Shown here: positions 7,025 through 63,583 of the stretch, in pieces
Position numbering within the stretch: the first letter of the stretch is position 1
Layout of the letters: each line of letters begins with the position of its first letter
NCBI GenBank assembly: GCA_965644295.1
Contig: CBFFRP010000475.1
Span: forward strand, 1-64,000
From: Paraphysomonas bandaiensis
Lineage: Eukaryota > Protista > Chrysophyceae
Direction of reading: 5' to 3'
Length of the DNA: 64,000 bases
The notes under the pieces: model-generated
Told to the model about the DNA's origin: nothing
Database searches by the model: none
The model's input: only the letters and a program-made list of their open reading frames with translations
Position numbers and translations under genes: made by a program

Positions 7025-7317
7025 TATTAGAATATGGACTGTATCCTAGTATATTCAATGTGGTACTTGAAGACAATGTACGAGAATACAGTGAAGTATG
7101 GTGATGTGTAGATGCTGTTATGATATTGAGAAAACTGAAATAGTTTGCTCTTTCAAGATATGTTTAGTAGCGAAAGGTCTACAGAAGTAGTGATTTATGC
7201 ATGGCACAAAACGAGCTTGTGTTGTTTAACACAATTCGTGTAAACGATATTAATAAATCTATCTAGTCTAACAACTTAATCTCTCTTTGATCTAAGTAAA
7301 ATGAGCATTTCCCAACA
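7025..7317 (+). repeat. 5' LTR of element A (TATTAG...CAACA)
   Basis: Direct repeat of 12186-12478; boundaries fixed by the TSD and PBS. Confidence 0.95.
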
Positions 7318-10300
7318 TGGTAGCGAGCGAGGAGGAGAGAAGGAGGATAGAGGAGTAGTTCCTCAGTTCAACGAGACTAACGTTGAACAATGGATTGAGG
7401 ACTTCGAGACATTCCTTATGAGGAAGGAACAAAGCGAGGTAGCGGTGGAACTGCCACCTAAGGAGAGCGACTTCGGGGAGCAGCCACTTACGTTGATGGA
7501 GGAGAAGGCGTACAGACAGGCTGTGAAGAGGTATTGGAAGGCGAACGCCATAGCTTATTCTTACTGCAGGGATGCGGTGCAGCATTCCCCGAAAGCGCTG
7601 CGTAAATTCCATCTTACCCACAAAGCGTTCAAGGCAGAAGGGAGTGGTGTAAACAGGTTCAAAACACATGTAATGATTGATGAGTTGAAGAAGTGTTTTG
7701 CTGGAGGGAAGCAAAATAGGATCAGTGACCTCTTAACTCAATATGGTTCTTTCCGTATGCGTCCGGAGGAGACGGCGAAGGACTACGTACTACGGTTCGA
7801 ACTACTGCTGAAGGAACTACAGGAGCAGCAGCAGGATATCTCGGAGGTATCAAAAACAAGTCGACTACGAGAAGGCTTGCTCAATGAAGAGTATGCTCAA
7901 CTGAGAGTTGGATTATACTTGATGGATGATGATGTTAATTATGTAACTGTATCACGTAAGATAGAAGGCTATGATGATACTATGGCTGGGAAGGAAGCGT
8001 TGGAGAAGAAGCGTAAAAGAGTGGAGGAGCTGAACCTGATAGACAGTAAGAAACGATATCGCAGAGAGAGGGATCATCGTAAGAAGAACAACGGTAAGAA
8101 GAAGCCGATGAAGAAGGATACAGAGATTACAGGGCAGCGACCTGGAAGTGCCGAATATACTGGGTGCAGAAATTGTAAGTCAAAGGAACATCTTGCCATC
8201 GATTGTCCAGCATCGAAAAAGAAGTACTCGCAAAGCAAGAGCAAGGCTGTGAGGTTTCAAGATGGAAGGAAACCAGACAAAAGACTACTTACAGTTGAAA
8301 ACATCAGGCGTGGAGAGCCAGCGGATTTGTCTGACGAAGACGAAGCAAATATGATCGAGCAACAGGAAGAGTATCACTTGTCATGTAATGTGTATGAGAC
8401 GAATATATGCAGTAGTGTGCATGAGGATATTCACTATACATACATTGATACCTGTTGTTCGTCATCAATGTTTTTGATAAATGATGTGAATATACTTGAT
8501 AGTCATATGCACACATCAAAGGTTATTAATGGTTCGAAAAAAGGGTCAGAGATATGCGTCACGAGTGTAGGTTCCCGTGGAGCATGGAAGAACATTGAGG
8601 TATCAAGTCAGATAAATCGGTGTCTTTGTTCTGGACGGAAGTTGAACGATATGGGATATCGATTTACTGTATGGTATGGTATACAGATATATGACAGAAA
8701 TACGGATGAGCTGGTGTTGGAGGGACCTATGAAGAATGGAATGACTGCTGTGCCAACACAGCAGTTATTGGAGCTTCCAGACGTATCGACATCCAGTGAT
8801 TCAGAAGTAAATCTCAGTGACCGTACGGGTGAGGATGAACTGGAGCTGTTACATAGGAGAGCGGGTCATTTTAACAAGCATGCGTTGGTAGAAGCCCACA
8901 AAAGAATGCTAATTATTGGGACTGGACTGAAACGAAAACATCTCTCGAAACGTGTTTCCAAAGAACAGTGTCTATGTGATGTATGCGCCAGGGCGAAGAT
9001 CACCAGAGTAAGTTTTCGGACAAAGGATGAGGACTCCGTTCGTCCAAATTTCTCGGCCGATATAGCAGTATACTTAAATTGTCCAGCTCGAGGAGGGGAA
9101 ATATATGTGCTCAAACTAACACACCATGCCAGTCGGATGTTCTGGTCGGAAGGGCTTGTTCATAGGACTGGGTCATCGGTACTGCAGGTTTTCAAGAAGA
9201 TTTTTGAAGGAGATGTGAAAAGGTACAAATTAGAAATGCATCATTACCATGCAGATGGAGCAGGGGAGCTAATATGTGATGAGCTGCGACAATATCTTAG
9301 GTCACAGGGTTGCTATCAACATACGTGGAGCTCTACGGACTCTCCTGAGATGAACGCGATTGAGGAGCGGAAATTCAGGACCTGTGGTGAGATGACATTA
9401 GCGATGCTGATTCAGTCAGGATTGCCTTCACAGTTTTGGCTAGATGCCTACATGGCAGCCAGGTACATATTAATTCGATTGCCTACAAAGACAGCGAAGG
9501 GGTATATGTCCCCTCTTGAATTTTTGACTGGTGAGGCTCCCAACCTGAAATATCTCAGAGTATGGGGGTGTCGTGCGTATGTCCTCACTACAAAGGCGGA
9601 TCGACGGAAAGACTGGGACGACAAGGCCCTTATCGGATATCTGATAGGATATTCAGATGAAAAGGTAGGATATGATGTATATCTACCTGCGACTGATAGG
9701 GTCGTCACGTCGGTACATGTATTAACTGATGAGTCCATACCGTCACGCTCGGAGAGCTATTTCGCTGAGATAGATGCTCTTCGAGTGAAGGAGGCCGAGA
9801 GACCGAAAATTGTGTCTGACTATGCGGGCTTAGAAGGTACATATCATATTGATGATGAGGATGGTCTTCTCTACAAGACCACGAGAGTAGTAGAACGAAA
9901 GGGGGTAATAGTAGCCTATCGATCTCTGGTAACTGCAGGTCGGAAGCATATCGAGCACCGGGTGCCGATTCACGTCGAGGACGTAGTGCGAATGACTGCA
10001 GAAACTCCCGGGAATACCGGATATATAGGAAAGGGGGACGCCCTGAGTACTATGCCAGCCAGGGTGCTGGACCAGGGAAGACCTGGAGGGTTACAGGAGA
10101 GTCCTGACCCAACCTGTCAGGAGACAGCTGTGAGGTTGCAGACCTCTGAAGACTATGAGTCTGGGGTTGTGAGCGGGGCTCCTCCCACAACGCACGATGT
10201 GCGTGCTCAGGATGAGCAAGGTATGGGTTCTTATATACCTCGTCGACCGATTGAACTAGATGGTGATGGTCGGGTCCGACGCAAACGGCTGCAGCGGAGA

Positions 10301-12012
10301 CTGGCAAACGCGTCAGTTTTAGGAGAGATTAATATGGTTGAAGTACCGGATGCGCATAATATTGATCTTAACCATGCAGAGACAGAAGATATCAAGATAC
10401 CAAATTCATATGCCGAGGCAGAGAGATCTCCACAGTATCAACAATGGAGAAAAGCTCGAATGGTGGAGAAGACATCATTGCTGAAAAGACGTGTCTTGAA
10501 GATCGTGAAAATTCCAAGCGGAGTGAAATTAGTTAGAGCGAAATATGTGCATACGGTGAAGCGAGACATACTAGGGAATATAGTAAAGTACAAGGCTCGG
10601 CTAGTGGCATTAGGAAATCTCCAAGAGAAGAAGGAGGAGGAGCCGTCCACTTTCGCTCCAGTGGTTAAGGGTATAACCATTAGACTAGTGTTAGCGATTG
10701 CGTTTATGTTACAGATGCATGTGCATCAATTAGATGTATCATCCGCATTTTGCTATGCAGATCTGGAGGATGACGTGTATATGGCACCTCCACCAGATGA
10801 GGAATTACTAGCTGGATGGTGTTTTCAACTAATCAAGGCATTGTATGGACTGCGATCTTCACCGCGACAGTGGAATAAACATATTGACAAGTTTATTAAA
10901 TCATTGCATTTTACTCCGTGTATTTTGGATACGTGTTTGTATATGCGATGGAGTAACGGAAAACTGCATTTATTATTGATATATGTTGATGATATCATAA
11001 TTGCATCCGCTGATCTGACTTACTTGGAAAGCGTAAAGCGTAGGTTCTGTGAAACATTCGAGATGCATGATCTGGGAGTGTGTAAGCGATTTCTGAACAT
11101 CAGGATAACCAGAGGAGAAAATTGGTATATGTTAGATCAATCTGAGTATGCTAAGAATATTATCAAGAAATTCAGCTCAGTTATGGGAAAGAGTAGTAAG
11201 AATAAGGAGGCCCCACTACCTACTAATGTTCAGGATCTGTTGGCAGAGGAACGTGAACTTACGGAGGAGCAGAAGCAGTGGGTTGACTCATTTCCGTATC
11301 GGCAAATTATTGGAGCAGTGTTGTATCTAGCAATGCATACTAGACCTGATCTGGCTTATGCAGTGGGGTTATTGTCTCGATTTAGTAGTTGTCCGACATA
11401 TGCATCGTGCAAACTGGCGATTCACTTATTGAAATATTTGCGTGGAACAATTGATGAGGGCATCAGATTCAGTGGGAGTGAGTTCGACTTACATGTGTTC
11501 AGTGATTCAGATTGGGCTGGTGATAGACTGACTCGGCGATCGACAACAGGATACATTGTGTTCTTATGTGCAGGCGCATTGGCCTGGCAGTCTAAACTAC
11601 AGACCACAGTTGCAACTTCGAGCATGGAATCTGAATATATGGCGGAGTATGCGGCTATGCAAGAACTGGTGTGGCTTCGGGGGTGTTCAAGGAGCTCGGG
11701 CTCTTAGTTGCGAAGCCGACTCCATTCTTTATGGATAGCAAGAGTGCGAAAGATCTCTCCGAGAATCCTGTGTATCATAAGAGGTCGAAGCATATAGACA
11801 TCAAGTATCACTGGGTGAGAGAGCATGTAAATGGAAAATTTCCTACGGCAAAGTTGATTCATGTGTCGACGGATGATATGGCGGCTGATATTTTCACGAA
11901 GGCATTGTCAACGAAACTTTTCAGTCGTCATGAGAAAACTATTACCGGGGTTAAGAGAAGTGTGTCAACCAGAGTTGAGGAGCAGCAGAAGAAGCGACCC
12001 CGAAGAGGTTAA
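7301..12012 (+). CDS. Copia Gag-Pol polyprotein; 1-nt frameshift in RNase H near 11680
   Basis: CCHC knuckle CRNCKSKEHLAIDC; PR YIDTCC; IN LHRRAGH..CDVC plus D/D/E (SADI, HADG, IEERK); RT KARLVA, QLDV, LYGL, YVDD; RH SDSDWAG, ADIFTK. G5 run at 11679-11683 versus G6 in element B. Confidence 0.95.
7318..7334 (+). promoter_or_regulatory. Primer binding site, probably initiator tRNA-Met
   Basis: TGGTAGCGAGCGAGGAG directly follows the LTR. It is complementary to a tRNA 3' end ...GCUCGCU-A-CCA, implying an A1:U72 pair typical of initiator tRNA. Identical in element B. Confidence 0.75.
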
Positions 12013-17584: not shown

Positions 17585-17869
17585 TACTGCTGTTCATATC
17601 TACATGTCCATGTAGCTACATGCATGTTGGTAGGTTGGTTTGTCCATAGTTGGAAAAGGATGCTACTTTAGAGACTCTATAGATGCATATACAAGTAGAC
17701 CAAACATTCGAATATTCTTGTAGTATCTTTGAATATTCTACTAGTTGAACAACACAATTATGATCCACTCATTCAACTTGCGTATCTTTTCTCTGTATAT
17801 TCATATCTATACGATCTCCTTCTATTATCACACACTCAGAGTATCACAATTACACCACAAGATACACAC

Positions 17870-20149
17870 ATGGCAGATGATGTTAGACGAGCTAATGTTC
17901 AGGCGAAATGCCGTATGATTATTGAATGTCTTCAGGAGATACTGAAGAGTGAAGATACAGCGGCTGATGTTCGGCCCCATATCAGTGACGTGATCAACAG
18001 ATGTGATACGATTTTAACTAACTTAAATCCAACAAAAGTTGCTCTCTATGGCGGTACAGGAGTGGGTAAATCGCGATTCATTAATCAGTTACTTCAAGAG
18101 ACTGTTGTTACAGCGGGTGCACAGTCCAAGTCATCCACTTCAGTGGTGAGTGAGATTGTATCTCGGCCAGACATGAAGACATACAAAGCAACAGTGTATT
18201 TCATATCAACCCGAACTATGAAGGAACGCCTTGAATACGCGGCAGAAATGCTGCAGGAGAATCGGTCAAACGAAGGAAATAGCAGACTCAAAGCTATAAT
18301 GACTGTGATAAGGCACTGCTTTTCTAACGACCTTAGCTATGAGAATCCCACTCCACTAACTCCAAACGAAGAAAACCGTGTACTCCTACAGAACATTGGG
18401 CGCCAGCCACTAGTGCTTGAGCGAGACTCCATAAAGGAGTTACGAGAGGCTCTGATGATCTATTCGCATCTACCTGCGAAAAATGCGCCACCCGATCAAT
18501 GGCAGGCCATGACTGTGGACTTTATTCGCATCGAAGGAAACTTCGAACACCTTCCCAGCAATGTGATTGTGGTAGATTCTCCGGGTCTCTTTGATGCGGT
18601 GGACATGAAGTCCCAGCGAGCCCTTGAGGTTGTGGATTCTTGGCAGCAGATTTGGTTCACAAATCGGACATGTAGATTTCTGACTGGGAAACAAGAACAA
18701 CAGGCTTTTCGAGAGTTGTGTGCGACACCATCGCGCATGGAAAAAGTTTCTGCTGTATGTACGCATGCCGATGCTCTGTTGGACGCGGAAGATGACTGTG
18801 GCGAAGAGCCCCGCACACCAGCAGATCTGGACTTCGAAGAGATGGAAGCAACTGCCAGAAACCATATCATTGAAGTCTTATGTAGTGGCGACGCGGGCGA
18901 TGTTCGTAGAGAAGTGCACATACCAGTCGGATTCGTATCGAATGCACGACGTATGGAGGATCGATTCGGCATGGGCTACTGGCGTGGCAGGTTGGGAGAC
19001 CTTGGAGCAATGCAGGGTGAAACTTTAAATGCAATGGAGGACGCGCTGAGTGAAGTCATCGGCATGCTAGAGGCTCTAGGGTTGCAAAATCCTCCACCTA
19101 ATTTCCCGCAGGGCTATTTGGATGATCTGATCCGAAACACCCACGCAGCGATTGGTGCACTCATGGATGATTACGTCGACACGTTTTCCAATCGTGAAAA
19201 TATTTCCCAATTGTCTTGTGATATCCATCGCACTGGTATTTGGGATGTTATTAGATGGAATACTTGGAAAGCTACTATGGACACAGTCCGCAGGGGAATA
19301 TTCGTTTCGACAGGCCAAGCGCGTCGATACATTAATATCAACACTGATATTAGCAGCGCGTGGGTTCGAGCAAAGGATAGAGAAATCCGAGGTCTGACCG
19401 AGCACTTCGCTACATTTAGGAACGAAGTTCGCCACCTGGCGGTTCAGTGGCAAGAAAAGCCAGCAGGATTTGCAAAAAGCCTTCGTATCGATGTTGACCG
19501 CTGGAAGCACCGCACAACTGAAATAATGCGACAGGCGTTCGATGTTGCTACTCTCGCAGATCAGATTCGAAATTGTTTCACTCGCAAGAACGTATATGGA
19601 CCAAGAACGAAAGGTCCAGATGAAGGTGAAATTCGTGAACAGGTGACTCGTCTGCTGCGTAGGCAGCGTGTGTATCGCGACAACCTGCTGAGGGAAGTAG
19701 ACGCATTGCAAGCCGCGATTCTGCGCTACACCCAGCCTGTTCAAGTACTGAATCCAAACACTGTGGCTATCATCACCGGATTGATTGACACTCTTCAACG
19801 TCTTCCCGATCAAGATAAGTTCTATCTCAATGAAGATCGTGTGCCTGTTGACTTCGTTTGCCCACTGACCATGGAAATAATGAACGATCCTGTGTTTGTT
19901 GAGGATGGATGTATATTTGAACGCGATGCTATTATTCGCTATTTTGCTAATCGCCTTGAAGCCCCCTGTCCACTTTGCAGAAGGATTATCCATGTAAATG
20001 ATATCATGCCTCATGACTACCTCAGGCACCGTATCACACTATGGCGGGAGCAGAATCGCATTGAAGAGCTCAGTGAGTGGTGGATCGGTATGTGGGAGGA
20101 TATTGTTGCTCGTCTTCAAGATGCTACAACGGATAATGAGGTCGTGTAG
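17870..20149 (+). CDS. Intronless dynamin-superfamily (NUGGC/SLIP-GC-like) GTPase with C-terminal U-box
   Basis: G1 GGTGVGKS, G2 region SSTSVVSEI, G3 VVDSPGLFD, G4-like CTHAD, long helical region, then U-box VPVDFVCPLTMEIMNDPV...FERDAIIRY...CPLCR. Confidence 0.85.
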   Translation: MADDVRRANVQAKCRMIIECLQEILKSEDTAADVRPHISDVINRCDTILTNLNPTKVALYGGTGVGKSRFINQLLQETVVTAGAQSKSSTSVVSEIVSRPDMKTYKATVYFISTRTMKERLEYAAEMLQENRSNEGNSRLKAIMTVIRHCFSNDLSYENPTPLTPNEENRVLLQNIGRQPLVLERDSIKELREALMIYSHLPAKNAPPDQWQAMTVDFIRIEGNFEHLPSNVIVVDSPGLFDAVDMKSQRALEVVDSWQQIWFTNRTCRFLTGKQEQQAFRELCATPSRMEKVSAVCTHADALLDAEDDCGEEPRTPADLDFEEMEATARNHIIEVLCSGDAGDVRREVHIPVGFVSNARRMEDRFGMGYWRGRLGDLGAMQGETLNAMEDALSEVIGMLEALGLQNPPPNFPQGYLDDLIRNTHAAIGALMDDYVDTFSNRENISQLSCDIHRTGIWDVIRWNTWKATMDTVRRGIFVSTGQARRYININTDISSAWVRAKDREIRGLTEHFATFRNEVRHLAVQWQEKPAGFAKSLRIDVDRWKHRTTEIMRQAFDVATLADQIRNCFTRKNVYGPRTKGPDEGEIREQVTRLLRRQRVYRDNLLREVDALQAAILRYTQPVQVLNPNTVAIITGLIDTLQRLPDQDKFYLNEDRVPVDFVCPLTMEIMNDPVFVEDGCIFERDAIIRYFANRLEAPCPLCRRIIHVNDIMPHDYLRHRITLWREQNRIEELSEWWIGMWEDIVARLQDATTDNEVV

Positions 20150-36938: not shown

Positions 36939-37524
36939 TGTGATTCATATACCAAGAGATGTATCTGTTTCCTATTCAATAGTTACATGTTTAAATGCAA
37001 TGCTGTTCCTCCCTCAGAGTATGCTAGTTTTTTATTGCCAAGGTACTAGTTGTAACTATGTATACTTGTACCACTGTTTAAGTGCGTATATAATGAAAAT
37101 TTTTCATGTTACCCTTGCTCTATATATCGATTGTATAAGACTTCATACATGCCTGTGTAAAGTTTCGGATGTTTAAACTTGCAAAATGCCATCTACAACA
37201 CTATAATAGTGGATTCAGGTATAACTTCATGGAGAAAGAAAGGAAAGGCATGGTGTTGTGCTTAATACTGCATGAAATAATCGCGGTAACAGTAACGAAG
37301 ATTATAAGTTTAAGTTTGGGACATACTTTATTTAACAACCATGTACTCACATACGCAAGTAGTGCAATTATGTGATATAGTGAACCCTATCACCCTGCGA
37401 ATGCGCGATTGCCTACGATCATTGCCAACCATGCGTACGGCCTCACGCCACGTGTCAAAACTCATCAAATGCCTGGTTACAAAAGCTAATCTAGTTAACA
37501 GTACTCGTAACATCTTCTCTAACA

Positions 37525-39026
37525 CTAACACTGATAGCATTTAGCAAAATACTCAAACTCATCCAAATCTCTCAAGAATTTGACCATAGCAGCATAGCCC
37601 CCTACCCCAACACCAGCAAATATGAGCACACCAGCTAAAAACCAGTTGACAGCACGCATATAGGGTATATGCGCCCATTGAGGCGGAGCTTTGACCATAT
37701 CTTTATGATGGTCTACATTCGCAAACGCGATGTTATATGATAAAAGAGGAATTATATAAGTCGCCATGCTCATTGCAAATGCCCCCAAAAGCGAGTTCAC
37801 AGACCCATAAAACGGAAATGCAATAGCCATGAAAAGTATGGCCCCAGCAATGGGAAGTCTAGACAATACACGTATGTGGTACGAGCTTCCGTGAATGCCC
37901 AAATATTCCTCCCACATATGATATAAAGGCCCAGAGAAGAGACCGAATGCCACCATTTGATGTAGGCACATAAGAACAATTCCGATGTCTCTCTGCGGAG
38001 ATCTTTGAAATAGATTGAATGAATTCGCATCGTCCCGAGCATCATCGCCAAAGTTATAATACACACTAATTGCATTGGGCAGTGTAAGTGTGAAAACATA
38101 GATATACGACAGAAGATACGATCTGTCATAAGTAGACGGGTCGTTCATCACGTCTGCAACTTCAATATTGGAACTATGACCACCAAAAGTAAACATTATA
38201 TTTGTGAACCCCATGAAATAATTGATCAATGTATCTGGGGCCGAATACGTTACGTTACTATCTCTACCGTGCAGGTTAGATTGAGTCGTCATAAACCACG
38301 AAGTATAAGTGGTAGAGACGATTCCTATGACAGACATAAACCGGTAGTGGCGAAAGTTCGGAATAAATATCATAAGAGTAAATAGCATACCCCACAGGAG
38401 TCCCCAGTCTCGCTTGCTGAGACTGTCATCGAGGATATGAAAATTGGACGAAGTAGCAATAATTTGTACTGTGGACAAGCCAATGAGGGATAAGTATATG
38501 ATTACTCTTGTGACCTTTCCAGCAGTCGAGCCAACAAAATATGTTATCACCTCTGCGGCAAACATTAGCACATTTACTGCGCTGATCATACAACATAAGT
38601 CATACCTGTGTATGTCACAATGTGATGCTTGTCATTATAATACGGATGCGATGTATCAGTATTTATTTTGTGTCTATACTCCGCATGTAAACTGATTAAA
38701 AGAAAGTTTGTGTACAAAGCCAAAGTAGCAAAGAACACTTCCATGAATATACCCGAATAAATTCCAACAAGTGAGAAGGAATATGGAAGGGTCAATATAA
38801 CTTGTCCAACTTCCTTTGAAGCGGCTAATAAGAACCCATCAAATATCGTCCCTCCTTCAAATATATGTTTCATTGTCATACAATCTGTTGATTTTTTATC
38901 ATTGGATTGTTCTAATGGTCTTATCTCACTGCCACCTGTCTCATCAGCGGGTATATCTTGTTTATAAAATGGACTGATAGTCGTTTCATTCATCTTCTTT
39001 ATTTTATTATATTTTTGATCAGTCAT
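37525..39026 (-). CDS. AUX1/LAX-like auxin influx permease (AAAP family); one intron near 38553-38605
   Basis: EGGTIFDGFLLAASKEVGQVILTLPYSFS, LHAEYR, LSKRDW, FIPNFRHYR, TTYTSWF, YFMGFTNIMFTFGGH, YVFTLTLP, LMCLHQ, RLPI, AIAFPFYGSVNSLLGA, YIIP and terminal FAKCYQC match plant AUX1/LAX blocks in order. Confidence 0.9.
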
Positions 39027-39646
39027 ATATGTATAAACTATAATAGAAACATGATTGAATGTATATGAATGATGTGGAAGTGGAAAGATGGAGAAGGGGG
39101 GGTTGTTAGTTCGATGGAAAGATATGTCCCCTGGTTGTATATGTATATATAGCCTTACACACCTGTCGATATATAGCTACTCTGCTGTGTACAGGCAGAG
39201 AGTATCCATGTAACATATGCAGTGTACAGTACAGCATGCTGATGTACACTCTGTACCAATGATGTACTTCTATATGTACTGATGTACAGGCCATACTGAA
39301 AATCTTCCAAATAACTGAATAAAACTCTTAAAGATTCTTAAAAATTAGATACCACTGTATTTAAATTTAACCTTTTCAAAAAATCAAATAATTGGTTGGT
39401 TTTCTTATACACTATACTGCTATACTGTGTATGGTTATACAGAGTACATGTACTCCTATACATATATCTCCTGTATGTATACATACATATATATATATAC
39501 GTACATAGCATGCATACATCTGAATTTAAATTCCAAATCAATTGATAAGAAACAAACACAATTCCATTCAAATACAAGTAAGATAAACATATCTGTGTAC
39601 ACTTAATTATTAATTTAAACAATACACATTCATTTCATCTATTATC

Positions 39647-49481: not shown

Positions 49482-51543
49482 ATGTTAAAACGAAAATATT
49501 CTGATACAGAATTAGAAGATTTTGATACACATGAAGATCAAGAAGTTACTCATGAGGAAGCATTAAGAAGCTTTCATCAAATCACTGAACAATCATCACA
49601 TTCATCTGAGACTGATGGCATATTGATCATATCAGAGAAACCAGCACCATTACTATCATCACATGAATCATCACAGATACATACACATGATGATACTACA
49701 TCAAGAAAAACGAATTCAATGCCACGATGGAGTGAAGAGGAAGACAAGATGCTTGCTGCGGTATGTATGTATACATACATGTATAGAGAGAGATGTGCAT
49801 ACATACATATGTATACGTTAGATGGTTATATGCATGAGGTGGATATATATGCTAGATGTATGTATATGCTAGATGTATGTATACATATATATATATATAA
49901 AGGTGGATGGATACATTTGCATATTTTATATGGTTTGTGCACAGGCGATCGATCAATGTGCTTGGGAGAATCGCAATATGTCGATAGACTGGTCTATTGT
50001 ATCTGCGAAGCTTAATACTGGCCGCCCCCCTGACCAGTGTGCTCGTCGTTGGAACAATGCCTTAAAATATCGTCGCTCTGACTACCACTCCCTGCCATGG
50101 ACGAAAGAGGAGGACGACCGTCTAGAAGCATCAGTGAAAATGTATGAAGGACAAGGTGTGCGTGGCGGTGTCGATTGGGAGAAGGTTCGAATGGAGGTTG
50201 GAGAGAGACGAACAGTGAATCAGTGTCGTGGGCGTTGGAACGGGATCCTCAAGCATCGCACACCGCATGTTCGTAACACTCCGTGGTCTAAGGAGGAAGA
50301 TGATCTCTTGTTGGAGGCAGTTGCTCTGCATGAAGGGAATGGAAGGAGAGGGGCAGTAAACTGGTCTGCTGTCAGCCAACACCTACAGGGAACCCGTACT
50401 GGACAGCAGTGCTCTCACCGTTGGAACCGTGTCTTAAAGAACCGGGAATTGGCCTCCAGTGGACGTCCGTGGACGGATGAAGAAGATGAGCGACTCAAGG
50501 CTGCTGCAGATGAATTCAGTGGGCAAGGCTTAAGGGGCGGTGTAGACTGGCAAAAAGTAACGGAGCGAATGGGCGGAGAGCGTACTCCACAACAGTATGG
50601 TCACCGCTGGAATCGAGTTGTACGCTTCAAGGACTCCGCCAATAGGAATACGCCGTGGACACCGATAGAGGATGAGCGGTTGTTGGAAGGGGTGGCTTTG
50701 TATGAGGGTCAGGGGCTGCGTGGGGCAGTGGACTGGGGTCGAGTGTGTGAGTACCTTGGAGGTGACAGGACCGCGCAGCAGTGCTGCCATCGCTGGTGCG
50801 GAGTATTACGCCATCGTGGTAGCAATTCTAAGACTTCGTCCTGGACAGAGGAAGAGGATGAACGACTGACAGAAGCGGTACGCTTATACAGCAATCAAGG
50901 CCTGCGTGGAGGGGTTGCCTGGGGAAAAGTTAGTGAATATATGGACCTCGAGAGGACTTCTCAGCAGTGCTCCCACCGTTGGAATCGTGTACTACGTAAT
51001 CGCTTAGTGCCCACTAATACATCTCCTTGGACGGAGGAGGAGGATGCCAGTCTACGAGAAGCGGTGACAGAGTATGCTGGACAAGGTCTTCGTGGTGGGG
51101 TGGACTGGGGCAAAGTTGCTGGCGCCATAAACACTGGACGTACACCGCAACAGTACTGCACCCGATGGTACCGCGTTCTCAAGAATGCTGACAATGTGAG
51201 AGGAGCCTGCTGGACTCCGGAGTATGATCAGCGCCTGGTTGAAGCCGTAGAGATGTGTAAAGGCATGGGACGGGGTGGGACTGTGGACTGGGTCCGAGTC
51301 TGTCATCTCATGGGCCTCAATAGGACGCGAGAGCAGTACTGCGGGCGGTGGAACGGTGTACTAAAGCAGCGACTAGCGAAGGCAAATGCACAACCTGAAC
51401 CCAACCAGGAAATTTCTATGCCGGAGCTGACGGGTGCTCCTGTGGGCTTACCAACTGCTGCCCAAATGACAGTCCAGCCACAAGCACATGTAGGACAACC
51501 CATGCCAGCCCCGCGCCCGTCTTCACATCTGTTCGAAGTATAG
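49482..51543 (+). CDS. Myb/SANT protein with 8 tandem ~62-aa repeats; intron 49761-49944
   Basis: Eight units of W[ST]xEEDxxL...[DNA]WxxV...RTxxQ[CY]xxRW; the phase-0 intron joins the two halves of repeat 1. Confidence 0.92.
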
Positions 51544-58079: not shown

Positions 58080-61000
58080 TGTTGAGAAACGCTCATTCTA
58101 CACTAGATCACAGAGAGAATTTGTCGTAAGACTAGATAGATTTATTAGTATCGTTTACACGAAGTTGTGATAACCAACACTAACTCATTATAATCCCTGC
58201 ATAATATCCTACATATGCGAACCTCTCGTTACTGAACATATCTTGAAAGGTCAACCTATTTCAGTTTCTCAATATCATCACAGCATTTGTACATCACTAT
58301 ATTTCACTGTATTCTCGTACATTGTCTTCAAGTGACATACTGAATATACTAGAATAAGATCCATATTCTAATACTCCCACTCAATGTAGAATGCAGTGAG
58401 ACAAAACAACAGTGATCACAATAATCTGATAATGCTATGACTATCTAGTCCCATAGGTAGAAACAGATGTGAAATCTTTTAAAGATACATATATACCTAG
58501 CAGTCAACTAGATATACAGTTATGTGGGATTTTCACCCACTAAAACACACCTTTAACCTCTTCGGGGTCGTTTCTTCTGCTGCTCCTCCACACTGTTAGA
58601 CACACTCCTCTTAACCCCGGTAATCGTTTTCTCATGACGACTGAAGATCTTCGTGGACAACGCCTTTGTAAAAATATCAGCCGCCATATCATCCGTAGAT
58701 ACATGAATCAATTTTGCTGTAGGAAATTTGCCATTAACATGTTCTCTTATCCAGTGATACTTGATGTCAATATGCTTCGACCTCTTATGATACACTGGAT
58801 TCTCTGAAAGATCCTTTGCACTCTTACTATCCATAAAGAATGGAGTCGGCTTCGTTACCAAGAGTCCGAGCTCCTTGAACACCCCCCGAAGCCACACCAG
58901 TTCTTGCAAAGCCGCATACTCCGCCATATACTCAGATTCCATGCTCGAAGTCGCAACTGTGGTCTGAAGCTTGGACTGCCAGGCCAATGCGCCCGCACAT
59001 AAAAACACAATGTATCCCGTTGTGGATCGCCGAGTCATCCTATCCCCAGCCCAATCTGAATCACTGAATACATGTAAATCAAACTCACTCCCACTGAATC
59101 TGATTCCCTTATCAACTGTACCACGTAAATATTTCAACAAATGAATAGCTAATCTGCAAGTCGCATATGTTGGAGAAGTACTAAATCGAGCCAATAACCC
59201 CACAGCGTAAGCCAGATCAGGTCTAGTGTGAATCGCCAAATGCAACACCGCTCCAATAATTCCTCTATACGGAAATGATTCGACCCACTGCTTCTGCTCC
59301 TCCGTCAGCTCACGTTGATCTGTCAACAAATCCTGAACATTGGTAGGTAGTGGAGTCTCCTTATTCTTACTGCTCTTTCCCATAAACGAACTGAATTTCT
59401 TTACAATATTCTTGGCATATTCCGATTGATCTAACATGTACCAGTCCTCGCCTCTCGTGATTCTGATAGAAACCGTTTGCACACACCCAGATCGTGCATT
59501 TCAAACGTTTCGCAGAACCTACGTTTAACACTTTCTAAGTAGGTGAGATCAGCAGATGCAATGATAATATCATCAACATATATCAGCAATAAGTGCAATT
59601 GACCATTACTCCATCGCATATACAAGCATGTATCTAAAATGCAAGCAGTAAAATGTAACGATTTGATGAACTTGTCAATATGCTTGTTCCACTGCCTCGG
59701 TGATGACCGCAAACCATATAAAGCCTTGATCAATTGAAAACACCACCCCGCTGGCAACTCTTCATCAGGTGGAGGTGCCATATAAACATCCTCTTCAAGA
59801 TCGGCATAACAAAACGCTGATGATACATCCAACTGATGTACATGCATATGGAACATAAACGCAATTGCAAGAACCAGTCGAATGGTTATTCCCTTGACCA
59901 CTGGAGCAAACGTGGACTGCTCCTCCTCCGTTTTTTCTTGTAGATTCCCTAATGCAACCAGCCGCGCCTTATACTTGACTACGTTCCCGAGAAGGTCTCT
60001 CTTCACCGTGTGAACATACTTTGCTCGCACCAACTTCACTCCTCGTGGAGTCCGCACAATCTTTAAGACACGTCTCTTCAGTAGTGAGGTCTTCTCCACC
60101 TTCCGAGCTTCTCTCCACTTCATGTACTGTGGAGATCTCTCTGCTTCAGCATAGGAGTCTGGTGTCTTAAAATCATCATGTTGAAACTCTGCATGTTTAA
60201 AGTTAACAGTGCATGCATCTGGCACCTCAACCATATTTATTTCTCCTAACACCGATGCGTTCGCCAACCTACGCTGTAGCCGTTTCCGCCGTACACGACC
60301 ATCACCATCTAGTTCAATAGGTCGTCTAGTAGTTATATACGAACCCATACCTTGCTCATCCTGAGCCCGCAAATCTTGCGGTGTGGGAGGAGCCCCGCTC
60401 GCATCCCCAGACCCATGGTCTGTCGAGGTCTGCAACCTCACGACTGTCTGTTGACAGGTTGGGTCAGGACTCTCCTGGAACCCTCCAGGTCTTCCCTGGT
60501 CCAGCTCCCTGGCTGGCGTAGTACTCAGGGCGTCCCCCTTTCCTATGTACCCGGTATTCCCGGGGGTTTCTGCAGTCATACGCACCACGTCTTCGACGTG
60601 TATAGGCACCCGGTGCTCTATATGCTCGCGACCTGCAGTAACAAGTGAACGGTATGCTACAATCACACCCTTACGTTCTACAACTCTTGTTGTCTTATAC
60701 AGAAGTCCGTCCTCATCATCAATATGATACGTTCCTTCTAAGCTGACATAGTCGGATGCAAGCTTGGGTCTAGCAGCCTCCCGCACTCGAAGAGCATCAA
60801 TCTCTGCGAAATACTTCTCTGATCGTGATGGCGTTGACTCATCAGTCAATATATGGACTGTAGTCACCACCTTGTTTGATTCAGGAAGATATACATGGTA
60901 TCCTACCTTCTCATCAGAGTAACCCATTAAATATCCAACTAGAGCCTTATCCTCCCAATCCTTTCGTCGATCCGCCTTCGGTGAAAGAACATAAGTTCGA

Positions 61001-63583
61001 CACCCCCATACCCTAAGATATCTCAAATTTGGAGGCTCACCCGTTAGAAACTCTATAGGAGACATATACCCTTTATCTGTTTTCGTTGGCAATCGAATCA
61101 AAATATATCTGGCTGCCATGTATGCATCCAGCCAAAATTGCGGTGGCAGTCCAGATTGGATTAGCATTGCAAGAGTCATCTCTCCAGCAGTTCTGAACTT
61201 CCTCTCCTCTATGGCATTCATTTCTGGAGAGTCTGTTGAGCTCCACGTATGTTGATAGCACTCCTGTGTCCTAAGATACTGACGCAGCTCTTCACTGATT
61301 AACTCTCCTGCACCATCTGCATGATAGTGCTCCATCTTGAGCTTGTACCTTTTAACATCTCCTCTAAATAGCTCTTTGAAGACTTCTAAGACCGCTTCCC
61401 CAGTTCTGTGGACTAAACCGGTCGCCCAGAACATTTTGCTGGCATGATGCGTTATCTTTAACACATACCTCTCACCTCCTCTAGCAGGACAATTTAAGTA
61501 CACAGCGATATCTGCTGAAAAATTCGGTCTAACGGAATTCTCGTCCTTCGTTCGGAAGCTGACTCGGGTTATCTTAGACCTGGCACACACTTCACACAAA
61601 CACTGATTTTTGTGTACCTTGGCTGTGAGGTGTTTTCGTTTCAACCCTGTACCCATGATGAGCATCCTCTTATGTGCCTCCACTAAAGCATGTTTGTTGA
61701 AGTGACCCGCTCTCCGATGCAGCAACTCCAGCTCGTCCTCACCAGTCCTATCGCTAAGATTTACTTCACAATTACTCGGTGTAGACACATCTGGAAGCTC
61801 CAACAGCTGCTGAGTTGGAACTGCAGTCATTCCATTCTTCATGGGTCCCTCCAGTACCAGTTCACCAGTATTACAGTCATAAATTTGGATCCCATACCAC
61901 ACCGTGAATCGATAGCCCATTTCGTTCAGCTTACGTCCGGAGCACAGACATCGATTGATCTGATCTGAAATTTCTATGTCTCTCCATGCTCCACGGGAAC
62001 CCACACTTGTGATATGAATCTCTGATCCCTTCTTAGAGCCGTTTATCACCTTTGATGTATTCATATGAGTGTCAAGCATGGTCACATCATTCATCAAGAA
62101 CATTGATGATGAACAGCAGGTGTCAATATATGTATAATGCATGTCATCATTTACACTACATATATTCGTTTCATGTATATTGCATGACAATTTCATAACA
62201 TCCTCGATCATATTTGCTTCATCTTCATCAGAGAATTCTGCTGGTTCTCCACGCCGTATATTCTCTACTGTCAGCAGCCTTTTGTCCGGCTTTCTACCAT
62301 GATTCTTCCCTTTCTCTCCTCTTCTAGAATGCTTTTTCTTCGTCGTTGGACAATCAGCAGCAAGATGTTCCAGAGACTTGCAATTTCTGCATCCCGTGTA
62401 CTCAGCACTTCCAGGACGCTGCCCTGATATCTCTCCATCCTTCTTCCTCTGCTTCCTCCTGCACTGTTCAGTTGAATGGCTATGAGGAATTCCTTCTTTC
62501 CTGCAATATCTACAGTTGCCCTTCTTACGCTTATCCCGTTCCGTTCGAGACCGTTTGCTCTTTTCAATGAAGTTCAGCTCCTCCACCTTCTTGCGTTTCC
62601 GCTCTAACGCAATCCTTCCAGGAATGGTATCATCATACCGTTCTATCTTCCTTGATAATGTTGCATAATCAACATCATCAGGCATCAAATACAAAGCAAC
62701 ATTCAGAGGAGCATATTCTTCATTCAACAGACCTTCTCGTAACCGTGTTATTTTTGAGAGCTCCGATATGTCCTGCTGCTGCTCCTGTAGCTCTTTCAGC
62801 AGTATTTCAAACCGTATTATATAGTCCTTCGCAGTCTCCTCCGGACGCATACGGAAAGATCCATACTGAGTCAACAGCTCACTGATCTTGTTTTGCTTCC
62901 CTCCAGCAAAGCACTTCTTCAACTCATCAATCATAATATGCGCCTTAAACCTGTTGCTTCCTGTTCCATCAGCCTTGAACCCTTTATGTAAAAGATGGAA
63001 TTTCTGAAGCGCCTTCGAAGATGATTGCACTGCCTCTCTGCAGTACGAATACGCTATGGCATTCGCCTTCCAGTACTTCTTCACAGCCTGTCTGTAAGAC
63101 TTCTCCTCCATTAACGTGAGTGGCTGTTCCCCGAAGTCGCTCTCCTTCGGTGGTGGCTCCACAGCTACTTCACTTTGCTCTTTCCTCATGAGGAATGTTT
63201 CGAAGTCCTCAATCCATTGTTCAACATTGCTCTCATTAAACTGTGGCACTACTCCTCTATCCTCCTTCTCTCCTCCTCGCTCGCTACCATGTTGAGAAAC
63301 GCTCATTCTACACTAGATCACATAGAGAATTTGTCGTAAGACTAGATAGATTTATTAGTATCGTTTACACGAAGTTGTGATAACCAACACTAACTCATTA
63401 TAATCCCTGCATAATATCCTACATATGCGAACCTCTCGTTACTGAACATATCTTGAAAGGTCAACCTATTTCAGTTTCTCAATATCATCACAGCATTTGT
63501 ACATCACTATATTTCACTGTATTCTCGTACATTGTCTTCAAGTGACATACTGAATATACTAGAATAAGATCCATATTCTAATA
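58080..63583 (-). mobile_element. Full-length Ty1/copia LTR retrotransposon (element B, same family as A)
   Basis: 294-bp LTRs at 58080-58373 and 63290-63583 (one mismatch seen, CAGAG/CATAG). TSD ATGGC at 58075-58079 and 63584-63588. Same PBS and PPT as A. Confidence 0.98.
58553..63306 (-). CDS. Copia Gag-Pol polyprotein; 4-nt deletion frameshift in RT near 59468
   Basis: Collinear with element A. TTT CT(----)ATC AGA versus TTT CTG AAC ATC AGG in A splits it into ORFs 59431-63306 and 58553-59482. Confidence 0.93.

Follow-up and report, generated by a model that had tools for sequence, protein, structure and literature searches.

An expressed AUX/LAX-like permease of an ochrophyte protist with a substrate pocket unlike that of plant auxin carriers

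Introduction

The closest described systems to the gene analysed here are the plant auxin influx carriers AUX1 and LAX3. In their structures, the carboxylate of IAA is held by Gln62, Gln153, Tyr244 and His249 (AUX1 numbering) and the indole NH by Asn58 and Thr325, whilst the indole ring packs against Ala61, Phe145, Leu146, Val251, Phe328, Ala329 and Pro332 (PMC12337342, PMC12364708). The proton sites are proposed to be His249 and His321, a thin gate is formed by His191, Arg194, Glu254 and Thr331, and a disulfide lies within the eleventh helix, M11 (PMC12337342, PMC12364708). IAA uptake by LAX3 is abolished by Y242F, A327F or F326A, each introduced singly, and no transport by this carrier is seen at pH 7.4 (PMC12364708).

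According to reviews, the green lineages have retained AUX1/LAX carriers throughout (PMC10015382). Responses to bacterial IAA are reported for marine diatoms, and a 2023 review treated the genes for IAA sensing and transport as not known in algae (PMC10623134). Our literature search found no description of AUX/LAX-like genes in diatoms or chrysophytes. The existence of diatom members is already known, since public pipelines label them ('auxin transporter-like', 'auxin influx carrier (AUX1 LAX family)'), these labels being automatic annotation only. Here, we analyse a protist gene which a preliminary description, made from the DNA sequence, had read as a plant-type AUX1/LAX carrier, and compare it with the plant, green-algal and diatom proteins.

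Results

The gene lies on the minus strand of the window (the whole stretch of DNA analysed, 64 kb), where an intact two-exon coding sequence occupies exactly 37525-39026 from stop to start and encodes a 482-aa AAAP permease. Exon 1 (38606..39026) comprises Met1 to Thr140, corresponding to residues 1-140 of the MMETSP transcript protein P0001, and the first nucleotide of codon 141; it encodes the N-terminal cytosolic segment, TM1 (SKEVGQVILTLPYSFS) and TM2. The intron (38553..38605; 53 bp, GT..AG, phase 1) splits codon 141, GAG (Glu). Exon 2 (37525..38552) runs from the last two bases of this codon to Cys482 and a TAA stop, and contains TM3-TM11, the TFGGH motif with His266, His338 and the C-terminal C479-x-x-C482. 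In three runs (X12, X6 and X11), RNA-derived contigs lack precisely 38553-38605; one run is a marine polyA metatranscriptome, which matches without a mismatch. These contigs span ~37322 to ~39064, stopping at 37322-37414 on one side and extending to 39056-39064 on the other, which gives approximate 3' and 5' untranslated regions at 37322..37524 and 39027..39064, respectively, both limited by contig ends. Independently of these contigs, a piecewise comparison found P0001 (482 aa) to consist of exon 1, the split-codon Glu and exon 2. P0001 served as the query and protein in all full-length analyses, with the exons themselves searched singly.

The AUX/LAX-like locus is a real, intact, spliced and expressed nuclear gene of the host, far beyond chance. 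A pseudogene reading was discarded because the frame is intact and the transcripts are spliced. All the motifs quoted in the preliminary description (SKEVGQVILTLPYSFS, FIPNFRHYR, TFGGH and the C-terminal FAKCYQC) are present in the exon translations, and the intron of ~53 bp that it proposed is the one removed in the RNA contigs. Its view that contamination was unlikely also holds, given the spliced intron, the transcripts, a second copy in the genome (described below) and a GC content (36-37%) equal to that of the flanks.

Elsewhere in the window, Ty1/copia-type retrotransposon ORFs with RVT_2 and retroviral SH3-like integrase domains occur at 7301-11707 (plus strand) and 59431-63306 (minus strand). 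Two further open frames on the plus strand encode an 806-aa protein whose N-terminal region is dynamin/GTPase-like and whose C-terminus carries a U-box domain (17729-20149) and a 556-aa protein with at least seven Myb repeats (49873-51543).

Host affiliation was assessed across the whole assembly (62.6 Mb, 669 contigs). The best named matches to its cytosolic HSP90 were Ectocarpus (86%) and Ochromonas (85%), compared to 72% for a flowering plant, and no named diatom HSP90 occurred in the top 120 matches. At least seven silicon-transporter-family loci were found, all with weak matches (at most 89 bits per half), and in several of them both halves matched the N-terminal half of the profile, which is unexpected for a diatom. 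No candidate for LHC (PF00504), PsbO (PF01716), Mg-chelatase H (PF02514) or the psbA/psbD family (PF00124) was detected in the 62.6 Mb with one search tool, run without a eukaryotic positive control; HSP90, Aa_trans and silicon-transporter genes were readily recovered from the assembly with that tool. By these sequence markers the host is an ochrophyte stramenopile and not a plant, as the preliminary description had supposed, and a green-algal host is ruled out. It appears to be colourless and non-photosynthetic, and is probably a colourless bacterivore. A diatom host was rejected on the weak silicon-transporter matches, the lack of a diatom HSP90 near the top of the matches and the absence of the four photosynthesis families. 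The earlier framing of the gene in terms of alga-bacterium signalling suits the diatom orthologues more than an apparently colourless host such as this one.

Both exons matched the Pfam profile Aa_trans (PF01490), exon 1 with an E value of 5e-11 (42 bits) and exon 2 with 2e-36 (126 bits) against a cut-off of 25.6 bits, jointly covering profile positions 2-403 of 410 and hence the transmembrane core that marks the AAAP family. When searched against the PDB, exon 2 retrieved LAX3 (9h61, 5e-82) and AUX1 (9jdr, 2.6e-79) among four matches in all (5e-82 to 5e-79) and nothing besides AUX1/LAX3 at E ≤ 0.001. Residues 15-467 of Arabidopsis AUX1 aligned with residues 27-482 of the window protein (E = 4e-100, identity ~37-40%). 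An AlphaFold (AF2) model built from a 54-sequence alignment had a pLDDT of 88.5 and a pTM of 0.85; a model from the single sequence (pLDDT 38.6) was discarded. The retained model superposed on LAX3 (9h61, 9h63) and AUX1 (9lva) with target-normalised TM scores of 0.95-0.96 and an rmsd of 1.6-1.9 Å, a match that is not independent of homology because plant AUX/LAX sequences were part of the alignment. The next-ranking folds, AdiC and SLC38A9, reached only ~0.6-0.7.

C479 and C482, the Cys-x-x-Cys of the eleventh helix, were invariant in the 54-sequence alignment, and the two His (His266 and His338) occupy the Na1/Na2-equivalent sites of a LeuT/APC fold extended by M11. The protein is thus an 11-helix LeuT/APC-fold permease of the broad AUX/LAX-like branch of the AAAP family. 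A generic AAAP identity was ruled out by the full-length AUX1 alignment, the restriction of PDB matches to LAX3 and AUX1, and membership of the broad AUX/LAX-like clade (see below).

Conservation of the plant IAA site was then scored by mapping residues through the pairwise AUX1 alignment and an 81-row alignment. Five of the 13 IAA-contact residues are kept in the window protein, namely Gln62 (Gln75), Leu146 (Leu163), Gln153 (Gln170), His249 (His266) and Pro332 (Pro349). The second proposed proton site, His321 (His338), the gate residues Arg194 (Arg211) and Glu254 (Glu271) and the M11 cysteines C464 (Cys479) and C467 (Cys482) are also kept. The remaining eight contacts have changed: Asn58 to Lys71, Ala61 to Gly74, Phe145 to Ser162, Tyr244 to Phe261, Val251 to Ser268, Thr325 to Ala342, Phe328 to Leu345 and Ala329 to Phe346. 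In the gate, His191 is replaced by Arg208 and Thr331 by Gly348. Eight canonical plant rows, from Marchantia to maize, were invariant at all mapped positions, and the window protein therefore lacks the canonical pocket. At the sites of LAX3 Y242, A327 and F326 its native residues are Phe, Phe and Leu, the first two being the very substitutions (Y242F, A327F) that abolish uptake.

These changes are largely shared with the host's diatom relatives. Glu59, Gly61, Phe244, Ser251, Ala325, Leu328, Phe329 and Gly331 (AUX1 positions) are near-invariant in the clade formed by the host and diatom proteins, and 53 of the 137 columns conserved at ≥90% in both the canonical and the host-diatom group are fixed differences, including positions 59, 61, 244, 251, 325, 328 and 329. 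Position 59 is invariantly Glu in this clade and Gln or Leu in its environmental sister clade, whilst Lys at the Asn58 site was found in the window copy alone, most clade members having Gln. The preliminary description had singled out the change SNQVAQ>SKEVGQ as one that may shift specificity, and mapping onto the AUX1/LAX3 structures places it on ligand-contacting positions.

A second copy of the gene is located on another contig (G000:C29:1152-2573, minus strand, locus L005). It is intronless, encodes 473 aa and is 56% identical to the window protein; it corresponds to the transcript protein P0005, ends in ...NCYECDDDS and has Gln, not Lys, at the Asn58 position. The assembly also contains Aa_trans loci of other types, at least 15 of them. 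By word search, the closest relatives were marine environmental sequences and named diatoms at 50-60% identity, compared to ~40% for plants and green algae; the diatom proteins compared within the host-diatom clade are 45-57% identical. The named diatoms were Seminavis robusta (P0020), Thalassiosira exigua, Detonula, Cylindrotheca, Pseudo-nitzschia multiseries (P0046) and Mediolabrus. An exhaustive search of representatives returned 910 at E ≤ 0.001, only 56 of which reached ≤1e-30. A word search with a trebouxiophyte query gave mostly land plants, adding only Symbiochloris and one green-type sequence.

Phylogenies were inferred as a quick tree of 81 rows and a careful tree of 43 rows (LG+C20+F+G4 PMSF). 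The two trees agreed in the groupings that follow, with supports given for the careful tree. All AUX/LAX-like proteins formed one clade (100/100) against a distant CYxC group. Canonical land-plant AUX/LAX proteins, from Marchantia to maize, formed a 100/100 clade that excluded the window protein, and a second, non-canonical land-plant clade (Sphagnum, Calypogeia, Diphasiastrum, Ginkgo) received the same support. Trebouxiophyte sequences, Micractinium, Coccomyxa, Trebouxia and Botryococcus among them, fell into two or three groups. The ochrophyte clade (95/100) united an environmental clade with a host-pair/diatom clade (92/97). Within the latter, the two host copies lay outside the diatoms sampled, the position expected of an ochrophyte other than a diatom, joining a 38-row clade that held every named diatom homologue together with environmental sequences. 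The backbone among the ochrophyte, canonical, second land-plant and trebouxiophyte groups was unsupported in the careful tree, for which named algal sampling was thin in prasinophytes, charophytes, haptophytes and other ochrophytes.

Forcing the ochrophyte and canonical sequences into one clade, a grouping defined after the tree had been seen, cost 39 lnL units and was rejected (p-AU 0.0065). Monophyly of all green sequences was not rejected when forced (lnL difference 0.96, p-AU 0.43). On these sequence comparisons, the window protein belongs to an ochrophyte clade distinct from canonical plant AUX/LAX. Because neither of the two defining canonical features that were tested was found, we class it as broadly AUX/LAX-like and not as a canonical auxin carrier. 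The preliminary assignment to AUX1/LAX specifically, as opposed to a generic AAAP protein, was therefore half right: the protein is AUX1/LAX-like and non-generic, but it sits in a separate clade with eight of 13 IAA contacts changed, and the AAAP phylogeny that was to confirm the assignment places it outside canonical AUX/LAX. Nor does the idea of a special acquisition by this host stand, given two copies in its genome and a clade that also holds many environmental sequences and, across six diatom genera, at least seven named homologues.

Several features of the relatives were also recorded. The second coupling His (AUX1 His321) is Asn in the subclade of P0040, P0041, P0042, P0045 and P0046, the last from Pseudo-nitzschia multiseries, and Gln in P0039. 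As LAX3 H319A and H319R are inactive, coupling in the P0046 subclade may differ. The environmental sister clade consists of P0229, P0230, P0232 and P0052, and the 111-kb contig that carries P0232 is gene-dense and eukaryotic. The non-canonical land-plant clade comprises P0127, P0131, P0132, P0155 and P0233/P0382 (Diphasiastrum, Ginkgo, Sphagnum, Calypogeia, Ceratodon); no flowering-plant member was present among the matches obtained, and its composition suggests an older AUX/LAX-like paralogue that may have been lost in angiosperms. Many distant proteins at 25-35% identity also terminate in CYxC. These include P0336, P0342 and P0358 (Logan), distant AAAPs at 25-26% identity that have the tail without His249. 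Since distant AAAPs carry it, the CYxC tail with its disulfide would be older than the AUX/LAX-like clade. Finally, P0398, a 60-aa hypothetical protein assigned to 'Bacillus vallismortis', clusters at ≥90% with the Coccomyxa AUX-like protein P0249 and is probably algal contamination of a bacterial assembly.

Discussion

Taken together, we think it probable that this gene encodes an intact AUX/LAX-like permease acting as a proton-coupled symporter for a small carboxylate, which it would bind in a manner unlike the plant IAA mode and in an older state of the family's pocket. We predict a working transporter because the fold, the coupling His, the carboxylate-binding Gln, the gate residues Arg194/Glu254 and the disulfide are all kept under strong conservation. 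The most likely role for such a protein, as judged from its residues, is that of a proton-coupled carrier for a small carboxylate or an amino acid. It would move H+ together with a small carboxylate-bearing molecule, either an amino acid or an aromatic/organic acid, held differently from IAA in plant AUX/LAX and in a hydrophobic pocket of another shape, presumably roomier at TM1 and TM3 and tighter at TM8. An amino group might pair with the invariant acidic residue beside the unwound part of TM1, in keeping with an amino acid as substrate. For the ochrophyte clade as a whole, this substrate reading was drawn from residue states only.

The site of action may also differ from that of the plant carriers. 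Seawater has a pH of about 8. Given this and the inactivity of LAX3 at pH 7.4, we speculate that the carrier may act on the acidic food-vacuole membrane of a bacteria-eating flagellate, exporting digestion products to the cytosol. In this host, an ordinary nutrient carrier seems the more likely role of the gene.

The combination Gly61/Phe244/Ala325/Leu328/Phe329 would represent the older state of the family, with the canonical auxin pocket arising later, inside the streptophytes. The non-canonical state looks ancestral because green-algal and non-canonical land-plant members carry it too. A possible origin, although a doubtful one, is that an early ochrophyte acquired the gene long ago from a green alga, by endosymbiotic or horizontal transfer, and passed it on vertically. 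The ochrophyte pocket state is the green-algal state, and named members are limited to Viridiplantae and ochrophytes, but prasinophytes, charophytes, haptophytes and other ochrophytes were thinly sampled. A review reports that the red alga Pyropia lacks AUX1. In the quick tree a trebouxiophyte clade is the weakly supported (83) neighbour of the ochrophyte clade, whereas the backbone of the careful tree gives no resolution and is compatible with a monophyletic green group. The distant CYxC proteins P0336, P0342 and P0358 suggest instead a wider and older family.

That the protein is a functional IAA influx carrier equivalent to plant AUX1/LAX, importing bacterial or environmental IAA, is unlikely on the residue evidence. 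Its full-length similarity to AUX1, the identical fold and the conserved disulfide and equivalents of His249, His321, Gln62, Gln153, Arg194 and Glu254 are all consistent with such a carrier. However, two of the eight altered contacts reproduce the LAX3 changes Y242F and A327F that abolish uptake, Phe328 is Leu, and both residues that bond the indole NH are replaced, Asn58 by Lys (Gln in most clade members) and Thr325 by Ala. The lack of uptake by LAX3 at pH 7.4 also argues against this role, as seawater is more alkaline. The orthologue P0046 comes from Pseudo-nitzschia multiseries, a diatom reported to be responsive to bacterial IAA (review PMC10015382), and IAA transport genes are considered not known in algae (PMC10623134), both of which speak for an IAA carrier; the present host, in contrast, is seemingly a colourless bacterivore and is not known to respond to auxin. 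Single LAX3 mutants are uninformative about a co-adapted pocket, so joint changes could still fit IAA or another indole compound. Examples are Gly74, Ser162 and Ala342, which would make room, and Lys71 or Gln at the Asn58 site. IAA uptake by the window protein is therefore possible but not supported, and the altered pocket speaks against binding in the plant manner.

That the host received the gene recently by horizontal transfer from a plant or green alga, or that the assembly is contaminated with plant or algal DNA here, is very improbable and effectively refuted: although the named family has been described chiefly in land plants and green algae and the nearest solved structures are plant proteins, identity to plant and green-algal proteins is ~40% at most against ~50-60% to diatom and environmental sequences, a 56%-identical paralogue lies on another contig, the 64-kb stretch contains host-type copia elements and has a flank-like GC content, the intron is spliced by the host with identical transcripts in several independent runs, and the two host copies fall outside the 38-row clade that contains the diatoms, as expected for a non-diatom ochrophyte.

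With a symporter for a small carboxylate as our preferred reading, the ochrophyte clade provides a concrete candidate for indole-compound transport in marine protists. A wider proposal would be that this clade, including Pseudo-nitzschia and other diatoms, is the missing route for uptake or exchange of bacterial indole compounds (IAA, tryptophan and relatives), using a pocket that evolved apart from that of plants; judged from the sequences, we give this little credence. The 2025 AUX1/LAX3 structures lead to the prediction that members of the ochrophyte clade would not bind IAA in the way plant carriers do. The residue pattern further points to a late origin of the canonical auxin pocket, within the streptophytes, from an older carrier type that persists in green algae, in some land plants outside the flowering plants and in ochrophytes. 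Dating this pocket bears on when carrier-mediated auxin import evolved.

Compared with the known systems, the window protein resembles Arabidopsis AUX1/LAX3 (9jdr, 9lva, 9h61, 9h63) in its Aa_trans domain, its 11-helix fold and an almost full-length alignment that includes the C-terminal KCYQC. It differs from them in being only ~37-40% identical, in eight of 13 contacts, in an acidic Glu at position 59 and in having Arg and Gly in place of the gate residues His191 and Thr331. With the green-algal proteins (Trebouxia, Apatococcus, Symbiochloris, Micractinium 'auxin transporter 1', Coccomyxa, Botryococcus) and the non-canonical land-plant members (Sphagnum, Calypogeia, Diphasiastrum, Ginkgo, Ceratodon) it shares the two His and the CYxC tail. 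The non-canonical pocket G61/F244/A325/L328/F-or-Y329 is common to the window protein, the Trebouxia/Apatococcus group and the non-canonical land-plant branch, the Micractinium-type clade being variable at position 244. These green proteins nevertheless form separate clades, have Gln59 instead of Glu and are only 26-39% identical to the window protein. Its closest counterparts are the diatom 'auxin transporter-like' proteins, which belong to the same clade (92/97) and have the same pocket signature (E59, G61, F244, S251, A325, L328, F329, G331), whilst the host pair branches outside them and the window copy carries Lys at the Asn58 site where they mostly have Gln.
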